The notes under the pieces were generated by a model that did not search any database, had not been told where the DNA came from, and worked only from the letters and a program-made list of their open reading frames with translations. From Marsupella aquatica (Eukaryota > Plantae > Marchantiophyta), in contig OZ316898.1 of the NCBI GenBank assembly GCA_973895155.1, positions 16,413,420 to 16,477,419 of the forward strand: a stretch of 64,000 nucleotides of DNA, given 5' to 3'. The position numbers and the translations under genes are program-made. Positions within the stretch are counted from its first letter, which is position 1; the number at the start of each line of letters is the position of its first letter. Shown in pieces: positions 16,244 through 64,000 of the stretch.

Positions 16244-16810
16244 TGAGGTGAGAGCAAGATGTCAAGGAGAGGCAAAGATGTTGAGGCGAGGGCAAGATGT
16301 CAAGGAGAGGGCAAAATTTTGAGGCCAGGCAAAAGATGTCAAGGTGAGAGACAGATGGTGAGGAAGGGCAAGATGTCAAGGAGAGGGCAAAATTTTGAGG
16401 CCAGGCAAAAGATGTCAAGGTGAGAGACAAATGGTGAGGAAGAGCAAGATGTCAAGGAGAGGCAAAGATAAGGAGGTGAGGTAAAGATGTTGAGGTGAAA
16501 AAAGACATTGATGAGAGAAAGAGATGTTGATGTATTTAAGGAAAAAATGTCAAGGTTAGAAAGGAGGTTGAGGAGAGAAAAGATGACACGGTGAGAAAAA
16601 GATATAAGAATGAACTGTGAAAAATGTCAAGGAGAGAAAAGATGTTGAGGGTGACGGAAAGATATTGTAGTAGATAACGATATCAAGGTGAGCAAAAGGA
16701 AACATGTCGAGTTGAGAAAATGATGTCAAACAAGGTGAAAAAAGATGTTGTGGTGAGATAAAGATGTCAATGTGATAAGAAAAATGGTGAGATGAGAGAA
16801 AGATGTCAAA
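16244..16810 (+). repeat. Degenerate ~19-bp minisatellite (core AAAGATGTCAAGGWGAG) inside the Helitron
   Basis: Many adjacent copies of the core; a related array in opposite orientation lies at 25010-25410. Confidence 0.85.
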
Positions 16811-17637
16811 CTAAGGTAAAGTTGTTGTGGTGGTGTTTAATAACAGGACTGGTGTGTTGCACATAGAAATTGGAGTCGCAAAATAACTACCACCGCTTCT
16901 ATTCAACCCATGATTATTTTTGCACCCAAATTTTGTTGGCCTCCCTATTTCCCCCCTCTCCCATCCTCTCCCTTTCTTTCCTTGTTTTCCCCTCTTGCCC
17001 TCCTAGTGCCTTGTCCTTCCTCCCCCCTTTTTCTTTCTTAATTTAACACCATTAATTTTGTTTGAAAATGAGTTAAATTAATAATGGGAAGATAAGACAA
17101 TTAACCTCCAAAAAATTAAATCTCCTTTCTAAGAGCAAAAGCCAAAAAACAATTTGTCAATCTACTCTACTTTGCTACTTCCCCTTAGTGCTAGCTCTAT
17201 GCCAAAATGTACTCTAAATAGACCATAAAATAATCTACTTTCACTTTAATGCTCCAGGCCAAAAAGTACTATAAGCAAACTACAAAATAACTTCAGTAAC
17301 ATATTCAAGTACGCTACTAGTACATAGTATATCTACTTTGTACTATAAATTAGAACCAATTTTAGGTACCCATCTCACTCAATCCAAGCCTCTTAAATAA
17401 TTCTAGAAAATATTTGATGGTTAAGCATGGTTCCTTCATTTTTTTCACTTTAGTAATGAGACAATGGACAAAACTGACCGGATTCGTTATTATAGTAGTA
17501 GATGAGAGTATAATAACTACACCCTTGTTGTTAGACTCTACCTATGACCGGACGACCGGACTAGCCGGTCACCCGACCCCACTATATGTACACATATTCC
17601 TGACTATACAGTTATCTATTGCATTCATTCCATGACA

Positions 17638-17650
17638 CGTTATCAGCACG
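17638..17650 (+). promoter_or_regulatory. Primer-binding site, half-tRNA (Ile anticodon-arm) type characteristic of Bianca elements
   Basis: CGTTATCAGCACG abuts the LTR end; the same motif occurs on the minus strand at 40812-40824. Confidence 0.8.
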
Positions 17651-23572: not shown

Positions 23573-24287
23573 TGCTGTTGATGACATGATGTTGACGACC
23601 TACTGTTGAAACAAATATTAAAGCTAGATTTACTATAGCATCTGACTTTATTTAATATTGACATTTATTACAACGAGGACTGTTAGGCTACACTCTTTTT
23701 CCTTTAGTACTCATATTTTTTCTCTGCTACACTGATAGAGTTTTTACTAAGCTAGAGTTGATAAAAGTTTTTTAACGAGGTAGTCTACCTCGCTTGTACT
23801 TATATCATGTATTTCCTATGAACATGATATAATAGGTATAGTCCATGTTGTCTATATAGTTGTCACTATATATCCAAAGGGGAGTGTTAGACTCTACCTA
23901 TGACCGGACGACCGGACCAGCCGGTCACTCGACCCCACTATATGTACACACATTCCTGACTATACAGTTATCTATTGCATTCATTTCATGACACTTGTAA
24001 AGTTATAGTCCCCATGGGAGAGTATAAAAGACAATGTAGTAAAATTCATAAGTGTATTCTCAAGTATTATTTTTCTTGTTCTCATGTAGGTTATTGCAAT
24101 GTCATTATGGGGTTGTGTGTACCTTGGCCACCGAACCATAGTGGAACTACTTCACACATCCTTCCTATTATTAATTAATATAAAATCATTATAAAAAATC
24201 ACCCAAATGATCTAACGTCTGTCATTCATTTCAGTCCAAAATGTATTTTGTAACAAGACAAAGGACAGAAATGAATGGGGTTCAATA

Positions 24288-28443: not shown

Positions 28444-28683
28444 GCCTGCTTCGTTCCTAGTTTGATGTGGAAAATTGTGCGTGAGCCGTTAGGAGAGCAA
28501 ACGAATGAGCTACCTCTCATGTAACTCTCGGACAACGCGGCGTGGTGGTGGTGGTGGTGGTGGTGGTTCTACCCACATTACACTTTTGCTGTCCTACTAT
28601 TGACAGAAGAGCACGTTCACAACGACACACACCACACTCACGTTCACAGCGCGCAGGGCAGTAGGCACAGGCCAGAGAGGGAG

Positions 28684-31600
28684 ATGGCAGACTTCCGAGA
28701 TCTCGAGCTCATATTGGATACGAACCTGGATAGGGCAGGAATCGTTGCTGATGCGCCATCTCTTGATTTTCGGAAGTCAGCCACAAAAAATGCCGGTGAG
28801 GAATTTCGGTCTTCGGATCCTTCTGGTGGACGAGCGGAACTGGCAGAAGATGGTGGTCATGGTCATGACGGCCGGACGGAGGCGCTTGTGTATGGCCTGG
28901 CACCCAATCCTGTCCCGGGGGCAGCGTCTCTGAGCTTGGCCATGGGCTCCACGCTTTCTCTCAATGTTGTTGTCCCTCCGTCGACTCGTCTTGTCAACCT
29001 GGCTGTTGGCGGTCAATCATCATCGACAGCCAAGAAGGTGGTTGTTGCCAAGCCAGCGGACACGTCTTGCAGGAGCGCTCTGAATCCCAGCCCTGTTGTG
29101 GGCTCCGCCAAGGTGCTGGTGGCTGCCACTCCCCCCCTTCAGAGTGTGCACAATGGCAGCAAGCTTGCGAGCTTCATCTCCCCATTTCCAGATTACCAAA
29201 GGCTCAGGGATCGCAATTTTGGGGAACCCAAGAACCCCGCTGGCCTGCGAAGGGCCACTATTGTCTGGTTTAGGAACGATCTGCGTGTCCACGACAACGA
29301 GGCTCTGGTCAATGCCAGCAATGAATCTGTGTCAATTCTCCCCGTCTACTGCTTTGATCCTCGTGACTATGGAAAATCGTCATCGGGATTTGACAAAACC
29401 GGTCCATACAGAGCCAAGTTTCTTTTGGAATGTGTGGCCAGTTTGCGAGAGAATTTGAGGCAAAGAGGCTCGGAGCTGATCGTGAGAATTGGGAAGCCCG
29501 AGGAGGTGTTACTCACGCTAGCAAAGAGTGTTAGAGCCGATGCCCTTTACGCTCACCAAGAAGTAGCTATCGAGGAGATGGTCGCCGAGACGAAGGTCAC
29601 TGCTGCACTGAAGGAGAAAGGAGTGGACCCGAAATTCTTCTGGGGAAGTACCTTGTTCCACATTGATGACCTTCCGTTCAAGCTGGACGAAATGCCTTCC
29701 AACTATGGTGGCTTCAGAGAGAAAGTACAGCAATTGGAAGTGAGAGCTACTATACCTGCTGCCAAGCAGCTGAAAGGGTTGCCTAATCGTGGCAGCGTCA
29801 AGGCTGGAGATATTCCATCCCTTCAAGACCTAGGATTGAATCCAACTTCTGCCAAGCGACCAGTAAGTTATATTGTCTCATTTGTTTGAGAGACAATGGC
29901 ATCATCTACTCACCAATCTCATCGAATTATGTTTCATTTTTTAGCTGAGGATCTGTTTGTGTTTGAACGTAAAGCCCTCGCCCGTTAGTAAGCAAGAGCA
30001 TATTCTTCGAGTCATGTGATTGGAGTTTTGTCGTGTTATCTGTGCTTCTCTCAGGATCCTGGGCGTGGTAAAACCTATATTAACTTTCAAATCCTTGGGT
30101 TGCTGTGGGCAAGATGAATTTGAATATAAAGATATAGACCAACCCATTCAGGAATCTGTATTAGTATTACGAATATTACAGGATGGGGAATGCGATGGGG
30201 ATGGTGGGGGTGCCTACCCCTTCTTCCCCCAAGTACTAGTTCTTTTGTGTTTTCTTAAGGGTTTCAAACAAGTTCCAACTTCTGTAAGTTACTGATCGCC
30301 ATAGGTAATTGAAACGCGTACCAATCACAGTCAATGCACAGCTGCAAATATGGAGACTTTTCTGTATACAATATTGCAGTTCTAGGTCTCTATGTTGTTT
30401 CCTTCATGAAGGTGAGGATCATGCGTGACATTATTTTTTACAGCGCACTTAGACCTTAAAAGGACTTCTGAGGAAAATGATTCCTATCTCTCGTAGTAAG
30501 ACAATTTTGCACCAAACATAATCAGGTGCCGACTGCAGACTTTTTTTTGTCAGATTGGTGTGTATTGAATTTGGTGAGAACCTAATGTACGTGTAGACTG
30601 CAGACTCTTAATGGTCTTCAGGTTAGTATTGATCTCTATATCCCCTGAGGAGTTCTGCGTTTTCTGCTCCAGATGCATTTTCCACCTCTTAACCTTGTTT
30701 TGAACACCGGAAAGGACGGCTTTTGTGATCTTTCTTCGCCACTTCCTGTTGGGAGTTGATTTTAGATTTGTACTTGGCTAAGTAGGAGTATTTGGTTTAA
30801 GTAAGGTGTGAAGCGAGTGAAGTCGGATTGTCTCTGCACCCCACAACCTCTCTCACAGATATATCTGAGGGAGAAAGGGAAAAATGTTAGACTCAACTCA
30901 TAAGAGTGGCCCTTTCCTAGGGGCGATTGTGTTGAGAAGACCTGATTTAGCGTGATCATTGACTTGCCATTTAGAGAGAATTCAACTTGATTTGAATGCC
31001 TGGCACTGAGTTTTCACATCCTTGCTAAGCAGGAGAAAAGTACTCCATACGGAGGTGCTCGACTGGTAGGAGGTGAAGAGGAGGCATTGCAGAGACTCAA
31101 GAGTTTTTCGATCGAGACATCAAGTCTGTCCACGAGCAAAAGTAGTGACGGGAAGAAGACTGGCGACAGCATCTATGGTGCCAACTTTTCTTGCAAAATT
31201 TCTCCTTGGCTAGCCACGGGATGTCTTTCCCCACGCCGTATGTTTGAAGATCTAAAGAAGAGCACAAGCAGGTAACCTCAAAACTTTGCACAGGTGTTCC
31301 CAGAGCTCTTTTGAACTCACTGTCTAGAATGCTCCCCGGCAGGAGATATCTTCCTCGATAGAGATATGTTCACAAATTTGGGGATGTGATCAGCTTACGG
31401 TTCAGCACGTGACTTCTTAGGACTTGTCCAGTTCTGGTGTCGCAAGGCCACGAGTTGATCAAGTTCTATTGTGCTGCAGACCCTGAACGATAGAAACTAA
31501 TTTGGAATATATATAGATAAATTATTCTTGGTAGTGTTGTGGAGTTCCATTTTGGAGGCTTAATGCGTGGGACCATAGATCTCGCGTAACGGATGAATTC

Positions 31601-35913: not shown

Positions 35914-37400
35914 TGTAACGCCGCTAGCACGGCTGGTAATCAGTAATACAGCTTAATCCATATTTAGCACGTATAAAGTAGATGTAAAGTCAAAGTCAAA
36001 GTCAAAGTCTAAGCTCCACGACGACCCAATGAGTCAAGGGAGCTATGGCAAAAAAGCCAAATACAAAGCAAAGAAATGAGTCAAATGCTCATGTGAGGAT
36101 CTCTACATCCTCACTACTAACAAACTAAGGACCTTAAGAGTCACTAATGTGTAATGTTATCACATCGTTTCCTATCCACTGCCATGATATACAATCCAAG
36201 TTGCTTTGGTGGCAACCTAAATAGATCATGCAGATCAGAAACAAGGAATTGATGTGCTACTTGAACCTCCTCATACCGTCTACATGCTATGAATACATGA
36301 TATTCATTCTCAATGCTACCACTATCACAAAGTCTACACACCCTATCCTGTCTCCTAATTCCCTTCCATATACCCTCCTCTACCTCCAAGTGATGTGAGC
36401 TGAGTCTATATCTAGCAATCACTTGTCTCAACCTCATAGAAATGGGAGCTCTAAGATACTCTTGTTCTTCATACAACATCATGGGGTTTACATCCCTCAT
36501 AAAATACTGTAATCTAGGGCTAGGATCACTCCAAAGTTTTCTAATAGCTTTATCACGCAAGAGTGACCAAAGCTTCTTTGGTTGAGTATGCCATTCATGC
36601 TCAGATAAGTCTCATGATTGGGCCCAGCTACATACATCAGCATACCAACCAAAAGCTCTAGATATGTGAAAGGCTTGCGTAGGTAGCCTAGAATCATTCA
36701 ACGCCTCCACTCTCCTAGCATATTGAAGAGTGTGATAGAGAGCTTTGACCTCCAATGGTAGAAGACCTGCCTCAGCCAATAACAAGGGGTATGGGGTTTG
36801 GGTTTTCACTCCAAGCTCCATCTCCAAGAAACTTTTGGATGGCCTCTACCTTTTTCCAACCAGATTGAGAAGTAGAAGGGCCCCATACTTGCACCCCATA
36901 AAGAATAACAGGCCTTACCAAGGAATTGAAGAGTTGTTTCTTCAACTTCCAAGTGGAAAGGCTTGAATGCTCCCTTGCACTTCTGAACCATGTTGTACAA
37001 GTCCGTAGTTATAAGCATAACAACATTAAATTAGTTAGTCATGATGATTAGGCCAATAATGATGAGAGTTCACACTCGGGCTGGCAACACAACACCTGAC
37101 ATACCGCCAGATTAGGAGCGCGTTATGGCTATCAGCCTCGGGTCCGTATAACTGACCCGGTATCAAAATCTTTAGCATGAGACTTGGACTAGAGGAGTGA
37201 TCGGTAAGCTTCGGGTGTGATAAGCTTGGCCTATCACAAGTAGGAGGAGCCAATCATTTGAACACTATGAGGGTATAAAAGGCAAGTTTTCCCCGCCTTT
37301 GTCTCACCAGTTCACTCCTCGCACCAACTTTGAGCTCATCTCCTCCTCTCCCCACTTAGCAATTCAGCCAGTCTTTGATAAGCCACTATGGTGCGTCCCA
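35914..37400 (+). mobile_element. Gypsy LTR related to the LTR at 58715, interrupted by a LINE; right end not defined
   Basis: Begins TGTAACGCCGCTAGCACGGC (cf. TGTGACGCCGCCGGTACGGC). Similarity resumes after the LINE (AGCATAAC, TCGGGCTGGC, GGTATAAAA box at 37272). Confidence 0.7.
35986..37000 (-). mobile_element. 5'-truncated LINE (RTE-X/L2/CR1-like) with a (GACTTT)4 3' tail
   Basis: ORF2 C-terminus: LVRPVILYGVQVWG, LLAEAGLLPL, IARYRLSSHHLEVEEGIW..RQDRVCRLCDSGSIENEYHVFIAC. Tail AAAGTC x4 at 35986-36009. Confidence 0.88.
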
Positions 37401-38301: not shown

Positions 38302-39361
38302 TTACGACACCGGTGGTGGATCCTCAATGGACGCCCCCAATGGTTCCTCCGCAACCACTGCCGTTGGTCCATCCTCTGACAGATTACCTGCCTCTGACCA
38401 AGTCAACTTTTCATCGGCCTGACTGGGCCCACCCTCGGCTTCGGCATCGGCTCAAGAATCATTCTCGGCTACGGCCGCAGCCTTGGCTTCAGCCACTGTC
38501 TCCCCGGCCTGCTCAAGAGGTGGATCTGGGATACCGGCCTCATTGCTGAGTAGTTCGGCTTGGGCCGCGCCATCCCCACCTTTGGTGATAGCGGAATCTA
38601 TTGCCGTGTTCATGCCGGAGGTTGGTGCCGGTTTGAGTACGGCTTGAGGGGTCGAATAACCTCCGGACCCCGAAGGTTTCCGCTTCTTCTTCTTCACTAT
38701 CTCCACAGCCTGTTCCTTCCCCTTGCCGCCAACGTCCGGCACCGGGCCGTGTGTCACGGCTGGTCCTTCGGTAATTACCACCCCTGGTAACTGGTTTGCC
38801 CCAACGGGAGATGGACCTGATGCAGCTAAGCATTTAAATACTGTGGCTTGTTTCTTCAGCCGCTCAGTTTGGTTGTCGGCCCGCCGCTGTAGGTTCTCCA
38901 TCTTCCTTGTGATTTCCTCCAACTCCTCCTGGGTCTCATCCAGGTCCTTACGTGCCTTCTCCAGCTCGTTTTTGGCTTCCTCCAATTCCCTGTGGGCTTC
39001 CTCCAATTCCTTCTTGGTGGTAGCCCTCTCCTCCTGGGTTGCTCTCAGCTCCTTGTCGAGCTCCGCTACGACCTCAGACTCCATGTTATTCATCTTGGCA
39101 TAAGTCTGGTCGAGCTGGGCGTCCTTCTCCCGCAGGTCGGCCTTGAAGCTGGCCGACAGGGACGCAAGCTCCTGCTGTAGCACAATAATCCCTTGACAGG
39201 ATTTCCCTAACTCGGCCTCCTTCTGTTCAAGGGCTCCATGGATTTTCTCGAGCTCTCCCTTCAGCGCCCTCTCCCTTCTCTGAGTCTCCGCCGTGACCCG
39301 GTTGTTGACTGCTATATGGGCCTCCTCTGCGTTTCTCAGCTCCTTCTTCCATTTCTCCCTC
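38302..39361 (-). pseudogene. 3' part of a coiled-coil retrotransposon accessory gene, antisense to the 35914 LTR
   Basis: Homologous to 5070-5870; homology stops abruptly at ~39361, where Bianca leader sequence begins. Confidence 0.7.
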
Positions 39362-40948: not shown

Positions 40949-41474
40949 TCAAGTATGAGTTACAACAGAAACAATTTTTTGAAACATAAAAGACGGCTGC
41001 CAATTGAGATACACAAAATCCAAGACAAATACAAGTAGAAAAGAAAGGCCGGAAAAAACATTCGCATATATTATCGCAAAATAGAAAACGCGCTCGGCTT
41101 AAGTAATACAAAATGCAGTTATCAACATCAACAATCTGGCCTAAAAATCCCATCCATGAAGTCACGGTCGACACCATCGGAGGTTTTCGACTAATACATG
41201 AATAGCGCTCGGCGCTAGCCAAAAACTAACTAGAAAACTAGTCGTTTCTTGGAGACAAGATGCATCCAAACCCAGACAACATAGTCAAGATCCATTCCCT
41301 CCCACAAAATCCGTTGTCGTTTCAATAGCGCCCGGCGCTAGCCAAAACCTAAATAGTAGACAACCGGGAAAACCCTAACGCCAGAGCTGAGGTCGACTTC
41401 AATGCCACAAAATCCGGAAAACTTTAGCAGCGCCCGGCGCTAGCTTAAAGCGATCAGCAAAACGAAATTTCCAT

Positions 41475-41919
41475 CTAGCTTTCCGAGTTGCAATCATCAT
41501 CCACTCCTGCTGCTTCTCTCCGCCGATCTTTCTTGAAGCCGAGACCACGCAAACGAACGTATCCCTCTGAAGGTCCTCGACGAATAGCCTTCGTAAAATT
41601 TTCATTAGGAATATTACTGTCCTTAAAATCAACTCGCCCGAACATTTCTTGTACTCTTCGATCGATTGGGAGTACCCGGGTGAGACGAAAATTGACTAGA
41701 GAACGGAGGCGCAGGGGAATCAACAATCCAAGGGATGTTCTTCTCTCCAGGACTAATAGCCTCATCATACGGGAGAGCATGATGGTTCCGAAAAGTGGAA
41801 GTTTCAGTTTCTTCAGTCTCCATCCGCGATTCAAAAGAGCTGAAATGGCTCTCTTCCGGACGCACACGAGAAGGACGAAAAGCTGCCTCCCAATCCATTG
41901 GCTCATACTGACTCGCCAT
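41475..41919 (-). pseudogene. Possible small gene of unknown function (apparent frameshift near 41630)
   Basis: ATG-initiated 96-aa ORF (MASQYEPMDWEAAF...) overlapping a second frame that ends ...DDDCNSES*; no recognisable domain. Confidence 0.3.
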
Positions 41920-42074
41920 GTTTCAAAGATCTCGATCTAATATGTAACCTCTCCTCTCGTAAGAACGTCGTCCGCGAGTGCTATAGCCGACAAAGGTCAA
42001 AGAAAGGTCCGCAAAGACTAAGACGCCAGATAAAGGTCCGCGTACACTACCATTCCGAAACGACCATCAAACTA

Positions 42075-42410
42075 TCATCATCCCGTTCTATTGCCTCCCG
42101 AAACTATCTTCGCCTTGGTAACAGGTATCGTCCCGTTCTAGCGCCCTGCTCTAACGTCCCGTTCTATCGTCTTCCCAAAACAAAGTCTTCCCAAATGAAC
42201 TATCGTCCCGTTCTATCGTCATGTTCTATCGTCATCCCGAAACAAAGTCTCCCCTCCCGTTCTATCGTCCCGTTCTATCGTCCTCCCGAAACTATCGTCA
42301 TCCTCAACTATCGACATCCCCAACTCTCGTCGTCCCGAACAAAACTAAACTGAAACTAGAGTCGTCCCTTCCGCCCGGTCCCTAAACTATGGAATCATCA
42401 TCCTGAAACT
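42075..42410 (+). repeat. Degenerate short tandem repeats (CTATCGTCCCGTT-like)
   Basis: Multiple CGTCCCGTTCTAT and AACTATCGTC units between the two minus-strand genes. Confidence 0.7.
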
Positions 42411-42691
42411 ATGGTCCCCAATGGTTTTCCGACAATTGACTAAAGAACACAATCCAAATGGCAGTTGGTATCCAATGACGATGACCGTTGACAGGAAACA
42501 ACAAAGACTAGACGGCCATTTAGAGATTCCATTTGGCGAGCGCCAGGCGCTTGTAAAGAACAGAAGTCAAAAGTAATCAACAAGTAGAGAGAAATCAACA
42601 ATTTAAAAGGACCCTCAGCAGAGGGAAATAATACAGATGTTACAAGCGCCGGGCGCTGCTAAAAGATTTAGCCTCAACTACCCACTACTTC

Positions 42692-45600
42692 TCACGGTTC
42701 CGAAGATTCTGAGTCGGAACCAGAATCTGTACTCTGGGATCTGTCCATGGACACAGCCTCATCATCTACGTACTGGCTGCGGGAGAAGTCATCAACATAA
42801 GGATGTTTAATGAACTTTCGGTCAACACCCCTTCGTAACCGAAGACCTTTGTTTTCCCAGCAAAGTGTCCTTGCACTTTCTGCTTTCCTTGCGGCTTTCT
42901 CTGCATAGGAGGGAAGAAAAAACGGTTTTTCCGGTGTTTCTACGTTGTGTCTCGCGATCTTCCTCCGTAGTTTGAATCGTCTCCTTGCATTCCACTCTGA
43001 CCTGATATAACAAAGTCCATTTTGTAAGGCGCCTTTCCCCAAAACAACAAAAGAAATGTTATGAATTGACGGGAATGGAGAAAGAAGCTTACGAGTTTAT
43101 GAACATTACTCGAAAGAGTCATCACTATCGGTTTCATCTACAGCTGCACGACGCTCTCCCTTTTCCTCCTCGGAGTTTCTTGTACCTTGTTCCTCTCCAC
43201 CTTCACTCGATTCATCATCAGAATCAAAATTGAGAACCGACCAAAGCTTATCTTTTTTTTTTCTGTCGGCAGTAGGAACAGGTGGAGGTAACACTGCAAT
43301 CTCTTTGGGAGACAACAAATCCATGAAAACCTTTGAAGCGGTTTCAATAAATTCTTTCCGGTGTTCTATCCCGAGTACAAATCGTCCAGAGAAGTCGCCA
43401 GCAATGTAAGAGCCTCCAGCCCCAGCAGTCCAATCCATAAAAATATCACGAGGCCGTGTGACAAGCTCTATAACAGATTGCATAAAACCCACAGACAGAC
43501 GAGCATTTCCAGCAAACTCCATTTGCGGGAATGGATCTGATTTGAGCGAAGAGAGTCCGATCAAATTGGTAACCGAAGGGTCCTCACTGATGGACAGCGG
43601 CCGAAATTTGGGGTCTTTGGGAATTTTACATTTCCCATTAATTCGGCCAAATATGTCGAGCCTGAGGGTAAACATCTCTTGGTCTATCTTTGCCGCATAC
43701 ATCGGGTCAGACATCACAACATTATGCGAGCATATACACTGAAATTTCCTTGACTCCTGACAAGCAGCAATGACTTGCGACATGGGATCGTACTCCCCAT
43801 TGTGTAGAATTACAAGGAACCCATCATCTGATAAAAATGGATCCATGGATTTGAAAAAAGATCTAGCCATTGAGTGATCTGGAATGTTCCATTTAGGAAC
43901 CTTCTTATCAATGATAGATGGTTTGAACCCGGTCGGTAGGTAAATGAAGTCGGCATCCACTCCAAATGATCTTACTTTTCCCCCCCGAACAACTCCCTTC
44001 TCTTTAAATCCCAACTTAACGAGGTCTTTTCCCCATTTCTCCACATCACTAACCCACTCGGGCTTCTCCTCCTTGTTGAACGTCGAGTCAAAAAATTCAG
44101 AAAGACTTGTCTCAACCATGCAATGGCGAGACACAGTTGTTTTGAAGTTTCCAACTTCACGTTGGAAACCAGAAGCTATAACACTCTCCCTTAAAGATTG
44201 TCCACCTTCGACAGCTCTCTTTCATTTCTTCCTGGTACTCGTGGCGTCGATAGGAACTATAACCTTCCCTTTGTCGACTAGAGTAATGGGGTCCGATCGA
44301 GCTCCTGTGTTTGCCTCGGAAACTTCAGGTGTAGCATCCTTTTTCGTATCTCCTGTTCCCACCGTATTAGACTTCCTCCCTCCTAAAATATAACCAGGTC
44401 GTAGTTAGAATAAGTACTTTTAAAGTATTGAAAGAAGCTAGCGCCTGGCGCTAACCAAATGCAATTCACTTAAGTCGCAACCGAAGCCTAATAACTAAGA
44501 AAGAGAATACCCTCAACAAAATATTTTTTGCCAGCGCCTGGGGCTGGCAAAATCATGGATAGCAATACTTACTCTTCTTTCCAGATTTAGTAGACTCGCT
44601 CGGTGCTGCTAGCTCCGCTTTGGCTTTCGCGCGAGGTTTGCGACTCCGGTCCACATGCACAACAGTTGTTTCACAGATAGTTTGCAAGTTTGTGGCAGAC
44701 TTGTCTACATCGTCAAGTAGACCCTGCTTCATGTCGGACACAAGTTTTGCTGGCATCTGAGACTTTGAAAGCTTATGGAAGGCATCTTTTTCCCTTTGAT
44801 CAAAAGGAGAATCCCATCTATCTGTATCTAGATACCAGGGGCAGTGAGTTCTCTCCCATTTTGTCATTGGTCTCGGAGGAAATATGCCCTCCGTGGGGTA
44901 TATAGAGTACAAATCAGCCAAGGCATCATCTTCACTTATTGAAATCCACTTCATAAAAGCTGCAGGATATGCCCAGAAGTAATTAGGTTTGGTTACCTCC
45001 ATGTGCATGTAGAACCTATACACAAACCTCTTCGCTCGCTTCTGGTTTCTCTGGGTGTAATCTTCTTTGTCAGGGTACTTTGAAGGCCACATAGTGTGAA
45101 AGAACTTATTCTTCACGGAATCACCAAATCTCTTGAATTCATTTGTAACAAACTGAACTAGATCATCAAACAAACTACAATTCCACTCTTCCAATCTATT
45201 CGTGGGCATGGTTTGCTCAACTTCACGTAGACATGAATGTAACATGCCAGCAGCAATTCCCTCCACACTATTCCAAGTGATCCAAGTGTGGCACCACTGT
45301 TTGACTGGATCATCGTTAACACTTGCTGGGTGAAAAAACTGTCTCCGCAGCTCAGGATTGCAATGTGCCACAAGTAAAGTGCTTCGTAACTTTGGGTCTA
45401 GAGCAGAAACAGCGGTGAACAATTGTGCGCGGTCCATCGTACATACAACGGTGTCAGGCTTCTTCTCTCTCTTGTTTCTCTCTATGATAGCATACATTTC
45501 TGCACATGTACTGAGGAAATCTTCAAATTCAGGACTTAATAAGGGCGTAATTTTTGAAGACTTCACTGCCCAATCTTTGGTTGCGTCTTTCATCACGGCC

Positions 45601-46782
45601 GCATGCCGTTTTGAAATCTCATCCGCCGACCATGGACTCCCTTGAGCCTCCGCTGCCTCCATGTCGAGTTTGAATTGATGCGAGTACGACTTTATCTTAT
45701 TCTCACAAAGAATGTAAACAAGTGCTTCTTGTGGCATCTTCTTCGTATACCATGACCCCTTCCGAGTTTTCAGCCGAATGCTTTCAAACTTCTTGAAATT
45801 ACCCGGGTCAATCAGTTTACTGTAATACTTAAGGTCATGCGCCAGAATTCGTTTGATTCTGTCCACATCCAGGATCCAGGAAGGCTCTACAACTACTTGG
45901 CCAAGCCTACACGAACAAACGTTGAGAGTAAGAGTCAATGAAAAACAATTCATGTATAAGCAACGCCGAGCGCTAGTAAATACAGCACTCGCAAGATTTA
46001 AGGAAAGAACTGGAAATCATGAGAACTTACTGATTCACGGTGTGCATAGCTGCCTCAATTTCAATGAGAGATCCCTTGTCTCCTTTAAATATTGTACAGA
46101 GCACACGAGGATGATATTTTGGATTGTCCGGGTTCTCCTCTGTTACAAGCGTCCAGGAGTACAGCCTGTGATTTCCATCGAATACAGAGAACATCTTATC
46201 CTTCAAGACGAGAAAATCCGGGTCAGCCTCGCATTCAGCCTCAAACTTCTCGTTCTCCAATTGCCATATTGGATCCCATGAATCACGAATGTCCTGGGTA
46301 CAGGTCAGAACAATTCCGTTCTCATCCGTTGGCTGCACATAGAAACGCATCCCTATCGAAGAGTTGTAACCCATACTACGAAAAGAGTCTTTCAGCTTCT
46401 CGATGGAAGAGCTGTCTTTCTGCAGAGTACGAACCACCTCCATGTGAACCAATCGACACAGAGGGATTCGAGGCGGCTCCTTGTCAAATCCACGAGAATC
46501 CTTTCCAAAAGACATGACATATTTCGAAATGAGATCAGTCTCAGCAAGCGCGCAATCCGCAACATCCTGGATTGCAATTGTGTCTACATTGTCCATCTTT
46601 CTTCACAAAGGATTTGGACCCAAAACACCACTGACAGAAGTGAGCGGCAACAACTTTGAGGAACGAGTTACACGACGTGTATAGACTGAACCAGTAAACG
46701 AAGACTGCAAAGATTCAGAATAAGCTCGCTCCTGGTCAGGAACCGCAGTATACCCTCTGGAAGAAGAGGGGAATACCTCCAT
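42692..46782 (-). pseudogene. Spliced gene encoding a ParB/Srx-like domain plus an N4C/N6A DNA-methyltransferase-like domain; exons 46782-46031, 45906-44573, 44382-43110, 43001-42692 (1,223 codons, two in-frame TGA)
   Basis: Three phase-consistent GT-AG introns (124, 190, 108 bp) join four ORFs. FSVFDGNHRL (DGNHR at 46165-46179) is a ParB-like signature. MTase-like motifs: VDADFIYLPTG (43928-43960), FLSDDGFLVILH, and SVIELVTRPRDIFMDWTAGAGGSYIAG..GRFVLGIE (SAM loop 43415-43435). TGA codons at 46603-46605 and 44222-44224. Confidence 0.8.
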
Positions 46783-49014: not shown

Positions 49015-52000
49015 TTGACCCCATCTGAGGAGGGATCTTCCGTCGGAAGATCAAGATCAAACTCAAGCGATAGAGGTAAGACTAGAATCACAAAGACTAA
49101 GCCAGTGCCATATGTTGATCTTACAAGACATAGAAGTGAGAGGTACATTGAGGAAGATGTGGATAATTTAAATAGTCTTAGTGATTTTGAAGAGAGGGAA
49201 CAATTTGTGGTACCAGAATCACCTACTGTTGCCAAAAAGGTTCAACATTTAGAAGAGTTGGTGACTCAAGGTGCGCTTGAGGGAGAAAGGGCTAATCAAT
49301 TGATAGGAAACTTAATCTCTAAAGGATCTCTACTTGCACCAATTAAGGTAGGAAAGAAATCGTTTGTTTCATTATCTTCTGGGTCCTCTAGTGCTCGTCC
49401 TCCTTCCATCATGACATCCTCCACAAGGCTGAAATATACGGTTTTCAAGGGAAGAGGCCAAGATCCACATGATTGGTTGGGAGAATTTTTGTCAACAGCC
49501 AAAACCAACAAGGAAAATGCAGATCCAGATCTCTTGCGGATTTTTGAAGGACTCATGAAAAATGAAGCACATAAATGGTATACTCTATCCCTTACCCCAA
49601 CTATTCAGGGTAGCTGGCCTGATTTACAAAATGCTTTTAGGAAAGAATTTAGAGAAGCAGGAGCCACTTCTAGAGTGTTAGCTAGACTTAGGAGAATTCG
49701 CATGAGAAAAAAAGACACATTGAGAACTTATTCTCAGAATGTTAGGAAATTAATTCTTAAGATTAGACCTCTGCCTAGTGATGAGATGCAAACCGAGTAT
49801 TTCACAGGAGGATTGCCTAGAGAGATGAATAGATACATTAGAAGATCACACCCTGCCAATTTAGGAGAAGCGATTGAAGCAGCACAAGAGTTTGAAGATA
49901 CTGAGATGTCTCAGAGAAAAGAATTGAAAAAAGAGGAGAAGAAAGAAAAGGAGAGAGAGAAAAGAAAGCGTAGGAAGAAAAGGTCAGGAGGTAAAAAGAA
50001 AGAAAGAAGTTCTTCTAGTACCTCCTCCTCATCGTCAGAGTCTAGTTCTTCCTGTTCCTCCTCTTTCTCCTCTTCATCATCCTCATCTGATGATGAGTCC
50101 ACCCGCCATCGTAGAGACAGGGGAAAAGTATATCAGCCAACTAATAATGCGCTCAAGTCCCTTACAGGTGTGAAGAAAATGATTGATGAGTTGAGTGGCA
50201 AATTTGATAAACTTTCAGTTAATTTGGCAGACAATCGCCCAAAGAGGAGGCCTGCTCCGATAAACCGACCAAATGTTTGGTGCGCTAGATGTGGAGAAAG
50301 AGGCCACTATCCAGTGGAGTGTCCCCACATGGGGAGGCAAGCTCAATACATCGCGGAAGAATGGGACAAACCAGCCTACTATGCACAAGAACAAGACAAG
50401 ATTGACTGGTACATGGTCAATAATCCCCCGCCTATGAGAAGACCAATGGGACCACCAAGACCACCAATGGGTCGGGGTATGGGAGGAAGTATGATGCCTA
50501 GGCCCATGACAATGAGACCTCCTGTCAAACCTCCAATGGAACCACCCGGAGGCTATCCACCTCGTACACAGAGAATCCCTGGGACCTGCTACAATTGTGG
50601 AGTAGCGGGACATTATGCACCTGAGTGCCCTTACCCAAAGGCTCCTTATGCATATACCCCTATATGTGGGAACTGTGGAGACGAGGGCCATCTCCCAATC
50701 GAATGCCCCAAACCCGTGCAGCCAAAGTTGATGGTGAAGTATGTGAAGGATCCGGAGAAGGGAGAAACGGCAGAAGTCCGGATGATATTTCTGGAAGACA
50801 CGCACCTCATAACTGAGGGGAAGGTGAACCCGGAGGAATTGATTCCAGTATATCGAACCACAACCCGAAGTGCCAAAAGGAAAGAGCTGCTCAAGAATAC
50901 CCAAAGCGATTTTCCAGCCGCACCAATCGCTTTGCCAAAACGCGATTCTTCCAACGGACCAATCGCTTTTCCTCATAAGCATGCAAGGAAGGCTAGAGCA
51001 AATGAACAACCGCTTGGAGGTAAGCAGAAGGAGGGACTTCCCAAGGAATTAGACCCAACATATGACAGGTATGACCCTAAGTACTTTATCCGTGACATAT
51101 CTTCAGAAGCTCAAGAGTACATTGAGACAGAAGTCACAAATCAGACTTCTAAGGAGCAAGTGCCTTTTAAACAAGTCACCTTTCAAGATGGATCAAAATT
51201 TGAGGGTGTTAGAGTAGATGAGAAGTTAGGATATAATATAGTTAAAGATGTGGCTAGTACTCCAGCTAATGTTACTTTTGGAGAGTTGTTGAGGGATAAT
51301 GCATTGTATAGGAAGCAGCTTAAACCTCTTTTAAGTAGTAGGCGTAGGAAGTATAAGATGCCCCCGATGTCTGTGAATTTTACTGAGATAGAGGATTTTG
51401 GAGCCCCGGATGTAGAATTACAAATTGATGGATGCCTTATTAGGAGTGTACCTATTGATGGTGGGTCTGGAGTCAATATAATGATAGCACAAACAGCAAG
51501 ATCATTAGGATTTAGTAAGTTTGAAGCAACTCCTCGTGTTCTTAGAATGGCAGACCAATCTAGGGTCTTTCCTTTAGGAAAATTAGGAAACATAGAGGTT
51601 ATCATAGGAGGGTTACCTTTTGTCTTAAATTTTTTGATAATTGACTCCCCTAAACCATCTACTTTCCCTATCCTTTTAGGTAGACCATGGCTCTACAAGG
51701 CCAAAGTCAAGGTGAATTGGGAAAACAAAACTTTTTCTTTTGGGCACCCCAAAGTTATCTTGTCTTGGGATAAAGTGCAGCATCTCGGTGAGACCATGTC
51801 GTCCGATCCGGGATACACTTCAGATGATAGTACCTCGACAGTGGAATCAAGATGGGTAGACGAGATGATGAAGCTCAAAGAGGAGGATTTTAAGTTTGAG
51901 GAGGATGTTCGATACTTGGAGGTCTACACCTACTCAACCGGTGAAGATGAAGAGGTCAGGCAAGTCCACGAGACAAATTCTCCAGAAAGGTCTGAAATTC

Positions 52001-54993
52001 CCTCTTCCAATCCTACTTTGATTCTTGCACCTAAACCGATTTTTACACCTAAAGCAATTCTTTCACCTCTTCTGGAACCGAAACCGATTGAGGAGATGGA
52101 AGAATCGGATTGGGAAGAATAGCAATTACAGAAACCTAAGGAAGGCGAGGTAGCCCTAGGGAAGAGTACTGCCTACTTTGAGGAATCAGCTAGTATGACT
52201 GAGGGTATGGTTAAGAAAACCCAATATGTTAAAATTGAATTAGAAACCGATAAAACCCTCAATGTAGGAAGAGCGTTAGATGACATATCTAAGCAAAAAT
52301 ATAAGAAGCTACTAGAAGAATATAAAGATGTTTTTGCATGGAGCCACCATGACCTTAAAGGCATTTCCACTACCTTAGGTGAACATAGGATAGATGTGGT
52401 AGAAGGGGCAATTCCTATTAGGCAACGTTAGTATAGACTGAATCCTAAGTACTCTCTTATGGTTAAAACCGAATTAGATAAGTTGCTTGAAGCTGGTTTC
52501 ATTTATCCTGTCTTAAGTAGTGAGTGGGTCTCACCAATAGTGATAGTTCCTAAGAAGCCTGGACCAGACGGAAAGGTTAAGATTAGGGTATGTCAAGATT
52601 ATAGAAAATTAAATGCCGCTACTAGAAAAGATTTCCATCCTTTACCTTTTACTGATACTATCTTAGATCAGGTTGCTGGTCATGAGATGTATAGTTTCCT
52701 AGATGGATTTTCAGGTTATAACCAGGTATTTATTAGGAAATCAGATCAGTCCAAGACCACATTCACAACCGATTGGGGTACTTATGCTTTTTCTAGAATG
52801 CCTTTCGGTTTGTGCAATGCCCCCGCTACTTTTCAAAGACTAATGACTGTTATTTTCCAGGAATACTTGCGGGATTTTTATAGATGATTTTTGTGTCTAT
52901 GGGCAGAAGAAAGACCATTTAGAGTATTTGAAGAAAACATTTGCCAAGTGTCGGGAGGCAGGGCTATGTTTACACCCTGAGAAGTGCTATTTTGGCATGA
53001 AGGAGGGAATTTTGCTTGGGCATAAGATATCCCAGAGTGGCATTGCTGTGGATCATGATAAAGTCGCGGTAATCCTTGCCTTAAAAGTTCCCACTAACTT
53101 GCGTGAGCTAAGGGGTTTCCTAGGGTATGTGGGTTATTACCGTCGGTTTGTAGAGGGCTACTCCATCCTTGCCACACCTCTTACTCAACTCCTCAAGAAG
53201 GATGCTCCTTATGTGTGGACTGATGCTAGGGAAAATGCCTTCATTACCCTCAAATATAAGTTAATAGTCGCTCCTGTCCTTATCCCGCCTGATTGGGAAA
53301 AAGTTTTTCATGTTTTTGTAGATACCTCCAAGTTTTGTATAGGCTTAGAACTAAGTCAAAAGGATGAGCATGATAAGAGCCATCCGGTTTATTTTGCTAG
53401 TCGCCAGTTGAATAGTGCAGAGAGAAATTACTCCACCACGGAGAGAGAGGCCTTAGGCATGGTCTTTGCTTGCAAAAAGTTCAGACACTACCTCCTTGGC
53501 TATGACACTGTGTTTCATACGGACCATCATTCGTTGAAATATCTGTTCAACAAGGTGGACCTGTCGGGCCGAATTGCAAGGTGGGTCCTGCTTTTGCAAG
53601 AATTCCAATTCAAAGTGGAAGTACGAGCAGGCAAGAGTCACATCAATGCAGACTACTTATCTCGGTTGGAGGGAGAAGATGGCAAGGAAGCGGTACCAGA
53701 TCATTTTCCTGATGAGGAGTTGTTTCACATCGAGGGAGAACAATCGCTTTATGCTGATATTGTGACTTACCTTTTGACGGGACGACCACCAGAGCCAATG
53801 AATGCAGAGCAACAAGCGGTTTTTGTGTATAAGGCAGGGCCTTATACTCTCATTCAAGGTGTGTTACACAAAGCCATGCCTGATCTTAAACTCAAGAGGT
53901 GTTTGGAGCGGCATGAAATCCCTTGGGTGATAAGTGCTTTACATGAAGGGAATTCTGGAGGGCATTTTGCTGTTGCGACTACAATTGCTAAAATTAGAGA
54001 TGCGGGCTACTGGTGGCCCTCTATGCATAGGGATGTTTTCCAGTTTATCAAGGGATGTGATCCGTGCCAAAGGATGGGAAAACCTCTGCTGAGTGGGAGA
54101 TGGCCCTTAATACCTATCATGCCTTTGGCTCCATTTGAGATGTGGGTCCTATCCAACCAGTGACACAAAGGAGGAGAAATCGCTACATCATTGTTGCAAC
54201 AGATTACGCCACTAAATGGGTGGAAGCCGAGGCAGTGAGAAGAGATGATGCCGCCATCATAGCACTTTTTCTTTTTGATAATATTATCACTAGATATGGT
54301 TGCCCTTTAGAGTTGGTCAGTGATAGAGGCACACACTTCCTCAACAGCACCATGGAACTTCTCACAAACACCTACCTGATTAAGCACAGAAAAACAACAC
54401 CCTATAATCCTAAAGCAAACTGTTTGACGGAGAGAGCAAATGGCATTATTTGTAAGATTCTCACAAAAATCGTTTCAGCACACAAGAGTGATTGGGATAT
54501 GAAGCTTCCGTCTGCACTTTGGGCTTATAGGACAGCACAAAAGATCACAACCAAATGCACTCCCTTTTATATGGTTTATGGTATGGACTCCATTGTTCCT
54601 ATAGAATTTAGTATACCTACTGCACGGATATTAGATGACAGAAGATTACCTCCTGAGGAAAGTCAGCTCCTTAGATTGGTAGAGTTGGAGCACTTAGAGG
54701 AAAATCGCCTCTATGCACTCACACACACTCATACTCAGCAACAGAATCGGAAAGTGAATTATGATAAGAAGCTGAAGTCGACCACTATTGAAGCTGGAGA
54801 TTTAGTTTTACTTTATGACAACCGTTATTTAAAATTTCCAGGGAAACTCCACACTAGGTGGGGTGGACCCTATTTAGTTAAAAATGTTTGGGCTAATGGT
54901 AGTCTCCAACTTGCCACCACTGCTGGAGACCTATTACCCACTAGAGTTAATGGTCATAGAGTCAAAAAATATACCTCCCAGAGTTTAGATTAA
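49015..54993 (+). pseudogene. Gypsy gag-pol polyprotein (two TAG stops, two small frameshifting deletions)
   Basis: Retrotransposon gag, three CCHC knuckles, protease IDGGSGVN, RT (SFLDGFSGYNQ, MPFGLCNAPATFQR, IDD at ~52880), RNase H (FVDTS, NYSTTEREAL, TDHHSL), integrase (HEGNSGGHF..CDPCQ, SDRGTHF, WGGPY). Confidence 0.95.
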
Positions 54994-60286: not shown

Positions 60287-63200
60287 ATGCCCGTCACTCG
60301 TTCTCAAGCAGCTTACTTGAGGAGATTGACCAGCGAACGAGAAGGTGCAACCACAACAAGCTCCGATTCTTCGGGCTCGGAGGACTCGCAATCTCCCCGA
60401 CGAATGAATATACCACCGGGACCTTCGGGGTCCGGTTTGACCGGTCCTACTGCGGTTCCTGTGCCACCACCGCCACCACCGCCACCACCTATGGCAGCCG
60501 CCCCACCGATGGCCCGCGCTGCCTAAGCTCCTCCATAAATATCGCAATGATCGCGGTTTCATTATCAACCTTTCAAAGGGCGTCATGGGGATGATCCGGA
60601 TGAATGGTTGGATGAGTTTGAAGCCACTGCTAAGGCTAACGGGGAAGACGCCATTAAGTTAACCATCCTCCCCGAAGTGATGCGGGGAGAAGCTCGTCCA
60701 TGGTACAACTCGCTGCCACTTGGGACTACATGGGCACAATTCCAAGCTGCGTTGTTGCAAGAATTTCGTGCTATTGGATTCGAGCAGCGCTCTCTATTAA
60801 AGATCGGATAGCTTCGCATGGGAAAAAAGGAGTCCCTACGAAAGTTCATTCAGAAGTTTCAGGAACTTGCTGCCAAAATACGGCCCAGGCCTGGTGACGC
60901 ACTCCAACTTACATGGTTCCTCCATGGTTTGCCCACGAATATGCAATTCTGGGTGCGCCAGAATAATCCAATTTCAATGCAAGCAGCCATAGCGTGCGCC
61001 GAAACCTACCGGGAGTCCACCTATAACTCCCGGCAAAGCCAGCGGGCACGCCGCAAGAAGGGCAAGTACGAGACCTTCAGTGACAGTGACTCCGAATCAG
61101 ACGACGAGAAGAAGAAGAAACGCAAGAAGAAGAAGAAACGCAAGAAGAAGAAGAAACATCGTTCGACCTCGTCCAGTTCGGAGACTGAATCTAGTTTGGA
61201 TTCAACTTCGAACAGCGGGTCCTCCACCTCCAGCTCATCAGGAAGTGATTTGGAGAGTGAGAGCCGGAGCAAGAAGAAGAAAAGGCGGGTTAAAAAGGAG
61301 GGGAAAATCAAATCTCGTACTCGCAGAGCAATACCCGATCCAAAGGCTGCCGAAGCAGATAAGCTTAACAAAATCACAGATCGCCTCAAAGCACTATCAG
61401 TACATCTCACGGAAAAGCCGATGGAGAAGGAGAAACCATCTGAGATTCGAGCCCATGCGTGGTGTTCAAAGTGCTTCCAATCCGGGCATGTCGTGTAAGA
61501 ATGCCCAAGATGGAAGAACCAAGTTCACCAGGTGGACTTAGATGATGTCGACAACCCGGGACCTGAAGCGGAGTCCATGGAGTATTTCTTTGAAGACCCT
61601 CCTGATTCGGTGTATCAGATTTCAACAGTGGGTCCGCGTAACTTAGCGGGTAGAACTGCATACCCCTACCCAAACAATGGCCGAGGCTTCCAAGTTATCA
61701 GTAACCCTAGCATTCCTCCTAAACCAGGGATTTGGCGATCCCCGGTTTGTTACAACTGTGAGAAGCCAGGCCATTTTGCGAGGGAATGCACAGAACCAAG
61801 ACGCCAGGGGGATGGCCGTGGCACGCCACTTTGTCAAGTCTGCAAAACGGAAGCTCATTCCATGGCCAACTGTCCATTGGTAATGGCCGCTCGAACAAAT
61901 GCAGCAAGACCAGCCCAGGGCGGACCGGCCACGAGTGATGCGGTCATCCAAATGATTGCGGTGGAATGGCAAGATGACAACACCGAGTGGGTGAATCTGG
62001 TGGACGTGGCGGAACACCCTAATCCATCTGACGAGGCTGAGTGCTATCGTGTGTCAACAAGAGCCGAACGGAAGGAAGAGAAGCAGGAGGAGAAACGCAG
62101 GAAAAAGCAAGATACTACTCCGGTGCAGCCAGCGATAGATATACCCCCGAAGAAGGACGATGACTACCGACGGGATGACCCGAAGCTATTTTTCCCCCGC
62201 ATCGAAGAATTGGTAAAGAAACAGTTGGAGGCCTACGAAGCTCGGGAATACCAGAAGGCAATCGATAAGGACATCAAAGCAGCTGAGACAGCCCGGCGAC
62301 AGGAGCAAGAAAAGCAAGATAAGCAAGAGGAAGCCAAGCAGCAACCGAAGGAAGAAAAGAAGGAGGACTATGATATTAAGGAGGATGTGAAGAGTTGCCC
62401 GGTTACAGCAACGGTAGGACAACTGCTGCAAAACAATCCACAGTACAAACGACAACTGAGGGAGTTGCTTACGGGTCGACGACGAAGACGACTACCCCGA
62501 GTTGGGACCACGGATTGCAACATGATATGCGAGGACCTGGGAGCGCCGGACATCTCTATTGAAATTAATAATTGTACCATCAGGATGGTTCTTGTAGACG
62601 GAGGAGCGGGAGTCAACATCATGATGGAAGAAACGTCAGTCAAGTTAGGATACCTCACGTATCAACCCACAGCCCGAGCTATCAGATTAGCAAACGGGGC
62701 AAGGGTACTTCCATTGGGCACGCTTACACGGGTACTCACTCTGGTAGGAGGGGTGGAGTTCTATCTCAACTTCCTAGTCATGAGGCCGGTTCGGCCCTCC
62801 TCTTATCCGGTCCTCCTAGGCAGGCCGTGGCTGTACGGTGGCCGTGTGGTCACGGATTGGGGAAAGAAGGAGCTACGGTTTGGGACACCCACAGTACGGG
62901 TATCATGGGCAATGGACAATTATCAGGGCGAAACCCCATAGGGACCCGAGGAATATGATTCGGAGACCTCGGAGGAAGAGGAACTCAACATGATTGAACT
63001 CATCTCGTCCCTGTCCGAGGAAGATGTCTTCAGAATTGAGGCAACCCGCGAAACACATCTCCTGAATTACCCGAAGGCTGCTATTGAGCCCACCCCAAGC
63101 ACCTCTACTGCCCGGGATGAGGAAACACAAAAATGACTCATCGATACGGAGGACCTGGCTCCAGCTAAGCAGGGAGCCGATGTTGCTTCTACCAGTGCAG

Positions 63201-64000
63201 AGCCTCATGACCACGAACCAGCCAAACAACCGGTCGGGGCTGAAACCCCGAGACCAAGACATAAGAAACGAGTCTCCTGGGATCCGTCCATCTCGCAGTT
63301 GGAGGAAGTAACTCCAATCCCGAGACCAATCCCGGTTCCACCCATGTACGGAGGATTTCGGTTAGCTGAACTTGATGCGAGCCTGGACCCAAGCTTGCGG
63401 AACCAGGTTGAAGTCATCAGGAAGGAGCACTACCGGAAGTACACCATTGGGATGGATAAATCGTTTAACCTGGGCCACGCTCTGATAGGGGAGGCGGAAA
63501 AGTCTATCCAAGCTCTGCTCAAGGAATATGAAGATACGTTTGCATGGAGCCATCACGATTTAACAGGAGTCTCCCCCGAGTTAGGAGAACACACGATCGA
63601 TTTGAATCTGGGGGCCCATGCAGTACAGCAGCGACAACGTCGCATGAACCCAAGGTACTCCATCTTAGTGAAGGAGGAAATTGATCGTCTCCTCGCCGCA
63701 AATATCATCTACCCGGTAATGGCCAGTGACTGGGTCTCTCCCATCGTCATTGTACCAAAAAAGGGAGGAACGGACAAAAAACCTAAGATCCGGATTTGTT
63801 AGGACTATCGTAAGCTGAACGACGCGACCCGAAAAGACCATTACCCATTACCATTCACGGATATGGTTCTAGATATGGTAGCCCAAAATGAAATTTATAC
63901 ATTCCTTGACGGATATTCGGGTTATAACCAAATCTGGATTCGCTTCTCGGATCAGCTCAAAACAACGTTCACTACGGAATGGGGGACTTTCGCATTTTGG
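60287..64000 (+). pseudogene. Gypsy gag-pol (partial, with stops and frameshifts)
   Basis: MPVTRSQ start, gag core, K/S-rich tract, three CCHC knuckles, protease VDGGAGVN, RT N-terminus (WVSPIVIVPKK, FLDGYSGYNQ). Confidence 0.92.

Follow-up and report, generated by a model that had tools for sequence, protein, structure and literature searches.

What does a gene that joins a ParB-like domain to a DNA-methylase fold do when it lies among the retrotransposons of a liverwort, and is its product still likely to methylate DNA? The locus that raises this question sits on the minus strand of a 64,000-nt stretch of Marsupella aquatica DNA from contig OZ316898.1 (hereafter the window; all coordinates are positions within it), and the original prediction had described it as a horizontally acquired ParB-methyltransferase fusion gene with introns, carried by a mobile element and recently pseudogenized. 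The account that we favor, with a confidence a little above even, treats the locus as one young copy, truncated and lightly decayed, from a bryophyte gene family of the mobile-element type that exists in many copies and whose product recognizes the element's own DNA. That product is more likely a DNA-recognition helper of the mobile element than a working methylase. The window copy itself is dead, as it has a stop codon ahead of the methylase-like domain and the upstream half of the element is missing.

Four minus-strand open reading frames (ORFs; 46027-46596, 44553-45953, 43106-44134, and 42692-43042) had been proposed to join through three phase-consistent GT..AG introns. Reading each junction by hand on the minus strand confirmed this structure, whose exons sum to 3,669 nt or 1,223 codons (Table 1). 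The only in-frame stops are the two TGAs that had been predicted, one in exon 1 (46605-46603) and one in the RKK-(stop)-KR tract of the exon 3 linker (44224-44222), which precedes the methylase-like domain, and all of the motif strings quoted in the prediction are present in the sequence.

We do not regard this gene model as a product of chance, because its exons have homologues, the homologues of exon 1 end together at an intron border, the same border is visible in a related contig, and the order of blocks is kept in Calypogeia fissa. All 17 ORFs homologous to exon 1 stop at one residue, within ...AMHxxN(Q/K), at the site of intron 1, and several of these relatives share the tail upstream of the stop at 46605, including a methionine that matches the ATG at 46782. 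The closest relative for which DNA is available (Logan contig L003) has 71–74% nucleotide similarity across exons 1 and 2; the similarity breaks at intron 1, ending at 46025 and resuming at 45911, and the intron is ~245 nt long in L003 vs. 124 nt in the window. On the C. fissa contig CBCUJL010000010.1 (GCA_965154635.1; locus L001), the four exon blocks are all on one strand (8152-12288) and keep their order, with exon 4 represented by a tblastn match at 11995-12288 (E 1e-18). In Riccia, two annotated proteins, P0109 (835 aa) and P0110 (884 aa), contain regions like exons 1, 2, and 3 in order. Proteins of Riccia and Ceratodon have the LPSYAE ... VDDEA tail of exon 4 on the C-terminal side of their methylase-like domain, and exon 4 aligns to the C-termini of P0062, P0063, and P0086. 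The four-block architecture is found in the liverworts Calypogeia and Riccia, and in part in a moss. Comparisons of this kind lend support to the exon structure as drawn. Joints reported near introns 1 and 3 in contigs of DNA sequencing runs fall off the splice sites and probably come from divergent copies.

Sequence searches and fold predictions were run with single exons. The ORF of exon 3 (342 residues) has 88 phmmer relatives among 1.84 billion representative sequences, the named sources being the liverworts C. fissa and Riccia sorocarpa and the moss Ceratodon purpureus. The AlphaFold2 (AF2) model of exon 3 has a predicted local distance difference test score (pLDDT) of 85.9, and its best Foldseek match is M1.HpyAVI (E 3.5e-13), followed by CcrM, M.BceJIV, MboIIA, RsrI, the bdelloid rotifer enzyme N4CMT (PDB 8s9m; E 1.3e-9), and PvuII. 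METTL3-METTL14 is also among the fold matches, and those to DNA methyltransferases are better than those to RNA enzymes by 5–7 orders of magnitude in E. A profile of the exon 3 family matched DpnA/M1.HpyAVI (1.2e-8) and CcrM (2.6e-7) in the PDB. The permuted motif order of the beta class, which had been read from the letters of exon 3, is borne out by the fold model: in the numbering of the exon 3 ORF, the loop at the catalytic position (residues 65–68) comes first and motif I (residues 234–240), which aligns with motif I of DpnA, comes last. Against Pfam N6_N4_Mtase (PF01555), the window copy reaches 18.9 bits (gathering threshold 26.7) over the C-terminal part that binds S-adenosylmethionine (AdoMet) only, and the relative P0061 reaches 27.6 bits, which is above the threshold.

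Motif columns were counted over 33–38 members of the exon 3 family. Residues expected to bind AdoMet are retained in most of them (D234 in 34/38, G238 in 31/36, G240 in 33/37, and E257 in 29/37). The catalytic tetrapeptide is another matter: the position reads Y-L-P-T in the window copy and x-L-P-(T/S/N) across the family, and neither the window copy nor the family consensus has the canonical (D/S/N)-P-P-(Y/F/W/H). Proline P67 is invariant, position 65 is D in only 8 of 34 members, and position 68 is T, S, or N in 29 of 34 and Y, F, or W in none; one Riccia paralogue reads DPPT. A homodimer prediction for the domain scored 0.05, which is evidence neither way. Exon 3 is predicted to have the fold of a beta-class N6/N4 DNA amino-methyltransferase, with its AdoMet motifs retained and the usual catalytic motif gone. 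The fold and AdoMet-binding motifs of the proposed methyltransferase stand, but with a tetrapeptide that is degenerate here and family-wide, “methyltransferase” was an overstatement. We use the name “methylase-like” rather than methylase because the defining catalytic tetrapeptide was tested for and is not there.

The same columns bear on an alternative in which intact copies encode an active DNA amino-methyltransferase with a non-canonical loop, writing N4-methylcytosine (4mC) or N6-methyladenine (6mA) on palindromes near the gene (described below) under the targeting of the ParB-like domain, and in this way shielding the element from silencing by 5-methylcytosine (5mC) or marking it as self. 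Conservation of the four AdoMet-binding residues under selection would fit such an enzyme, as would a fold closest to active palindrome-methylating enzymes, a motif IV loop conserved as x-L-P-T-G around the invariant proline, and the DPPT of the Riccia paralogue. However, the aromatic residue that stacks on the flipped base is found in no family member, the Asp is kept in a minority, and N6_N4_Mtase covers only the AdoMet part, below threshold for the window copy. We consider an active enzyme unlikely.

Exon 1 had been proposed to be ParB/Srx-like, a claim that holds at the level of fold (Foldseek, a second structure search, and one motif) but without a match to Pfam ParBc. Exon 1 has 17 homologues (35–75% identity), and its AF2 model (pLDDT 85.4) gave Foldseek top matches that were all sulfiredoxin (Srx), KorB, ParB, Noc, or PadC, each with E of at least 0.13. 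In a wide VIA structure search, which is independent of Foldseek, 17 chains reached Z ≥ 2, and 12 of these are members of the ParB/Srx superfamily; Srx had the highest score (Z 5.8), followed by KorB (5.6), PadC (5.5), and SerK (5.2), and further matches from the superfamily were Atu1540, pNOB8 ParB, SbnI, Spo0J, SspE, Osa, and BrxU. The residues D140-G-N-H-R144 are invariant in 18 sequences (the window copy and its relatives), and in the model they follow a strand (136–138) and open a helix (142–154). The strand-helix junction is the phosphate-binding site in the ParB/Srx superfamily. A match to the DGQHR domain was weak (E 0.057), the family profile had no match in the PDB, and sequence searches of Pfam, NCBIfam, and the PDB otherwise returned noise. 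It is reasonable to assign exon 1, at fold level, a predicted ParB/Srx-type fold with a motif of the phosphate-binding type. Between the two domains, exon 2 had no match in Pfam, NCBIfam, the protein Atlas search, or a PDB profile search. One homologue of exon 2 was found (P0001, 46% identical), and a counterpart is present in the Calypogeia and Riccia relatives; by these alignments, exon 2 appears to be a conserved middle region of ~445–450 residues.

Read data give the best view of copy number. Four DNA runs under two organism labels contain 57–64% of the sampled words of the stretch, and 294–1,139 contigs per run align to the 4.3 kb of the gene (4,301 letters queried) at 90–100% identity. 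The contigs are spread across all identity classes, with high summed depth throughout and introns retained. These data describe a repeat family whose many variants can be told apart, rather than a host gene present only once, in agreement with the multi-copy status that had been anticipated. The prediction of recent and light pseudogenization also fits these data: the window copy is ~1% different from the longest contigs of high depth, and at position 46605 the window has a plus-strand A where contigs of all four runs have G, which restores the coding CGA. That TGA is therefore private to the window copy or to a minority of copies. For the second stop the evidence is suggestive only, one contig ending with an unmatched letter exactly at 44224. 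Positions with A or T in the window and G or C in the run contigs are about twice as frequent as the reverse, an excess that fits decay by deamination. Over longer times the family has been held to its protein sequence, as indicated by a comparison of 406 codons between the window and L003 (pN 0.156; pS 0.83, saturated), which points to purifying selection.

Palindromes lie downstream of the gene and within its introns. The 13-bp sequence AGCGCC-N-GGCGCT occurs five times exactly in the window vs. zero expected, and 11 times with up to two mismatches vs. 0.73 expected. Nine of the 11 lie inside 41204-45974, in the 3' flank and in introns 1 and 2 and never in exons, and many extend to 19–23 bp. 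Upstream of the gene there is no such palindrome before the gag-pol region of a Ty3/gypsy element that begins at 49015 (~2.2 kb upstream); a TGGCGCC resembling a primer-binding site lies at ~48263.

A different palindrome marks the Calypogeia locus. On L001, TAGCGAGCTCGCTA is present 24 times with up to two mismatches vs. zero expected, often within a 24-bp palindrome ATTGC..GCAAT (range 14–24 bp), and many copies show CpG-to-TpG decay. These copies are limited to a 10.5-kb block (2240-12688), where they occupy intergenic DNA, introns, and both 3' flanks, and the array encloses the ParB/methylase-like gene together with a divergently oriented upstream partner gene. Part of that partner has a conserved counterpart in Ceratodon, again upstream of the homologue (32% over 300 residues, E 2e-38). 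None of the Calypogeia partner ORFs is present in the window, from which the upstream half of the element, the partner-gene side in relatives, is missing. Judged from the two loci, each lineage appears to carry its own long palindrome, in introns and flanks only. The carrier would be a cut-and-paste element with the gene as its accessory, here truncated and nested among retrotransposons.

The same observations weigh on a second alternative, in which a host gene family, either domesticated or never mobile at all, has expanded and sits in repeat-rich DNA with palindromes that are unrelated regulatory repeats or resemble miniature inverted-repeat transposable elements. It would explain why the window holds neither a transposase nor element termini, and the homologues in Riccia, Calypogeia, and Ceratodon are annotated as ordinary genes. 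Against it are the hundreds of variant contigs per run over the whole 4.3 kb, introns included, the ~1% distance of the window copy from high-depth contigs, the confinement of a lineage-specific palindrome array to a two-gene block in Calypogeia, and the conservation of the upstream partner between liverwort and moss. We give a host family of this kind a low probability, and we hold it improbable that the methylase-like domain is an AdoMet binder or works on something other than DNA (RNA or protein), leaving the palindromes to be bound, if they are bound, by a different factor such as the partner's product: the domain's AdoMet residues are retained, its DNA-base pocket is altered, and METTL3-METTL14 is among its fold matches, but the best of these are all DNA methyltransferases, by the E-value gap given above, and both the ParB/Srx domain and the palindromes point to DNA.

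We return to the reading of the protein as a DNA-recognition factor. In this proposal the protein would not be a conventional methyltransferase but a sequence-specific factor of its own element, in which the pseudo-methylase domain, the middle region, or both read DNA and bind the element's palindromes, and the ParB/Srx domain binds or hydrolyses nucleotide. Binding to the palindromes would then mark or assemble the element's DNA, either for transposition or for protection from silencing.

Several observations weigh against this interpretation. A non-canonical catalytic motif is no proof of lost activity. The assignment of exon 1 carries modest scores (Z 5–6, Foldseek E of at least 0.13), and Pfam ParBc, DndB, and DUF262 matched neither the window copy nor any of its 17 homologues. 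Sequence searches of exon 2 revealed neither a helix-turn-helix nor any other DNA-binding domain, and what ties the protein to the palindromes is their co-occurrence. As for the carrier, the predicted mobile element gains support from the copy number, the palindromes, and the Calypogeia locus, but within the window we found no transposase, no terminal repeats, and no target-site duplications; comparison of the window with itself also revealed neither another copy of the gene nor terminal inverted repeats for the element. The partner ORFs of L001 have no Pfam match even at E 5, and language-model searches gave weak leads for this gene to FAR1 and ZSWIM RNaseH-like (Mutator-type) proteins. No RNA sequencing run contained the locus, and the splice junctions are as predicted from DNA and from comparison with relatives.

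A wider form of the proposal is possible, although we hold it tentatively and with some doubt: bryophyte DNA transposons may encode self-recognition, in which a nucleotide-dependent ParB/Srx domain fused to a pseudo-methyltransferase reads lineage-specific palindromes of 19–24 bp in the element's introns and flanks and co-evolves with them, giving the element an identity tag, similar to parS/ParB, for anti-silencing or for assembly of a transposition complex. Such a system would put bacterial parts for partition and modification to new use in a eukaryote, a case so far undescribed in land plants.

In a literature search we found no description of this bryophyte gene family. The nearest published system, compared by description, is that of the accessory genes PAG2 (N6-adenine methylase and SET) and PAG3 (ParB-like and 2-oxoglutarate [2OG] oxygenase) of red-algal DNA transposons, which are carried by Plavaka, Mutator, and Zisupton elements, have inverted-repeat arrays beside PAG3, and are proposed to encode a protein that binds its own element (bioRxiv 10.1101/2025.02.11.637652). 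Both systems are cargo of eukaryotic mobile elements, or appear to be, and unite a ParB-like domain and a DNA-modification fold of prokaryotic type, and inverted-repeat arrays lie by the gene in the window and in Calypogeia as well. The bryophyte family differs in having both domains in one protein with a middle region of ~450 residues between them, in having, where PAG2 and PAG3 have a SET domain or 2OG oxygenase, a methylase fold of the beta class whose catalytic motif is degenerate, and in its hosts.

Prokaryotic and phage beta-class methyltransferases (M1.HpyAVI/DpnA, CcrM, MboIIA, RsrI, and PvuII; PF01555) share the fold, the permuted motif order, and the AdoMet residues with the exon 3 domain, and in phage ParB-methyltransferase loci (Iyer et al., 2016; PMC4738411) the ParB-type domain is likewise N-terminal to the methylase. 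In contrast to these enzymes, the bryophyte gene has x-L-P-T/S/N in place of (D/S)PP(Y/F), introns, and a long middle region, and it has no significant sequence link to phage genes: tblastn against phages gave weak motif I matches to phage methylases with E of at least 0.08. A word-index search with the exon 3 family profile returned four Riccia proteins and no prokaryotes, and among the 88 phmmer matches, most of them with untraced sources, the only prokaryote-type one identified was P0068 (three N6_N4_Mtase domains, E 7e-7). By analogy with the phage loci, the predicted horizontal origin from a phage ParB-methyltransferase fusion is plausible.

Two eukaryotic 4mC enzymes of prokaryotic origin, bdelloid N4CMT (PDB 8s9m) and Marchantia DN4MT1 (bioRxiv 10.1101/2021.02.12.428880), are active and single-copy. 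They resemble the exon 3 domain in being beta-class folds in a eukaryote, in the case of DN4MT1 also a liverwort, whereas the family described here lacks the catalytic motif, is multi-copy, and includes a ParB/Srx domain (DN4MT1 was compared by description). The preprint on DN4MT1 and another on a retrotransposon adenine methylase concern different proteins.

The likeness of exon 1 to the ParB/Srx superfamily (ParB, KorB, Noc, PadC, sulfiredoxin, SerK/SbnI, DndB/DGQHR, and DUF262) lies in the same predicted fold and a G-x-H-R type motif at the strand-helix junction. It differs from ParB in having DGNHR instead of GERRxR, in its lack of a Pfam ParBc match, and in that no adjoining helix-turn-helix was identified. 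A functional parallel within plants is VANC, an accessory protein of the VANDAL (Mutator-like) transposons of Arabidopsis, which recognizes short motifs enriched in the non-coding DNA of its own element and acts in anti-silencing. VANC and the window gene would both pair an accessory protein of a DNA transposon with motifs in the element's own non-coding DNA, the function being proposed here by analogy; the protein folds are unrelated.

If the protein does recognize its own palindromes, it would be a second plant case of the VANDAL/VANC kind, structurally unrelated to it and parallel to red-algal PAG: a factor built from bacterial ParB and methylase parts that targets the element's own DNA. 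The window offers a testable pair of protein domain and 13–23-bp site, and the public Calypogeia genome offers a second; such pairs could be used to study how mobile elements in early land plants discriminate self from host chromatin. The family also calls for caution in annotation, as automatic pipelines label its relatives “Trimethylguanosine synthase” or “DNA methylase.” The former is the UniRef label of the R. sorocarpa proteins P0061 and P0063 and probably reflects mis-assignment of the methylase-like domain by an automatic pipeline.

Table 1. Coordinates of the ParB/methylase-like gene and its 3' flank in the window. Exons and introns are given in the direction of the minus strand.
Feature	Position	Strand	Description
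Exon 1	46782-46031	-	N-terminal tail and ParB/Srx-like domain; ends CA before GTAAGT
N-terminal tail of exon 1	46782-46606	-	Homologous to tail of P0092
ParB/Srx-like domain	ATG 46596 to 46031	-	Invariant FDGNHRL
Intron 1	46030-45907	-	124 nt, GTAAGT..GTAG, splits CA|G; degenerate palindrome 45962-45974
Exon 2	45906-44573	-	Middle region of ~445 residues, family not recognizable; ends A before GTAAGT
Intron 2	44572-44383	-	190 nt, GTAAGT..CTAAC..TTTAG, splits A|GA; palindromes 44440-44452 and 44533-44545
Exon 3	44382-43110	-	Basic linker, methylase-like domain, acidic tail; ends GA before GTAATG
Methylase-like domain	~44134-43300	-	Motif IV position Y-L-P-T; motif I D-W-T-A-G-A-G; acidic residue of GIE retained
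Intron 3	43109-43002	-	108 nt, GTAATG..TCAG, splits GA|G
Exon 4	43001-42692	-	Basic stretch, then LPSYAE..VDDEA tail; stop codon (42694-42692) included
3' flank	41204-42657		Five AGCGCC-N-GGCGCT palindromes, at 41204, 41327, 41429, 42539, and 42645
Tandem repeat, 62-nt	42138-42310		Within 3' flank

The remainder of the window is a nest of other elements and genes. A nearby gene borne by a long terminal repeat (LTR) element was ruled out as identical to the ParB/methylase-like gene, as it encodes a different, coiled-coil protein. Coiled-coil ORFs of 233 aa (plus strand) and 330 aa (minus strand) form an inverted pair at 5075-5772 and 38641-39358 (~700 nt, 71–80% complementary); they are unrelated to the ParB/methylase-like gene and probably belong to an LTR-borne family. 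Downstream, a search for a SUMO-protease exon that was limited to the ORF listing turned up no long ORF. A 138-aa ORF at 36144-36560 (minus strand) has a C-terminal Cys/His motif like the end of ORF2 proteins of non-LTR retrotransposons (long interspersed nuclear elements), a likeness seen by reading of the motif alone; it has no Pfam match.

Two ORFs carry domains of other kinds. One of 429 aa at 28600-29889 (plus strand) matches DNA_photolyase (PF00875, E 1.5e-42) and probably represents one exon of a photolyase or cryptochrome gene of the host within the transposon nest, and one of 309 aa at 7213-8142 (minus strand) has a NAM-associated C-terminal domain (PF14303, E 6.6e-13). A longer tract of degenerate repeats encloses a tandem array at 16241-16832, which has a unit of 76 nt and two copies that are 99% identical.

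Two different Ty3/gypsy elements occupy the plus strand. The one at 49015-54993 encodes a gag with zf-CCHC, RT_RNaseH, integrase H2C2, and rve, and no LTR pair was detectable for it within the window; the other, at 60818-64000, also has a gag with zf-CCHC, and its reverse transcriptase region is 67–70% identical to that of the first. A copia-type ORF (19494-20957; gag_pre-integrs and rve) lies between two direct repeats of 110 nt (17529-17638 and 23885-23994; 96% identity, 6.4 kb apart) and is probably part of a fairly young copia element with these repeats as LTR ends.

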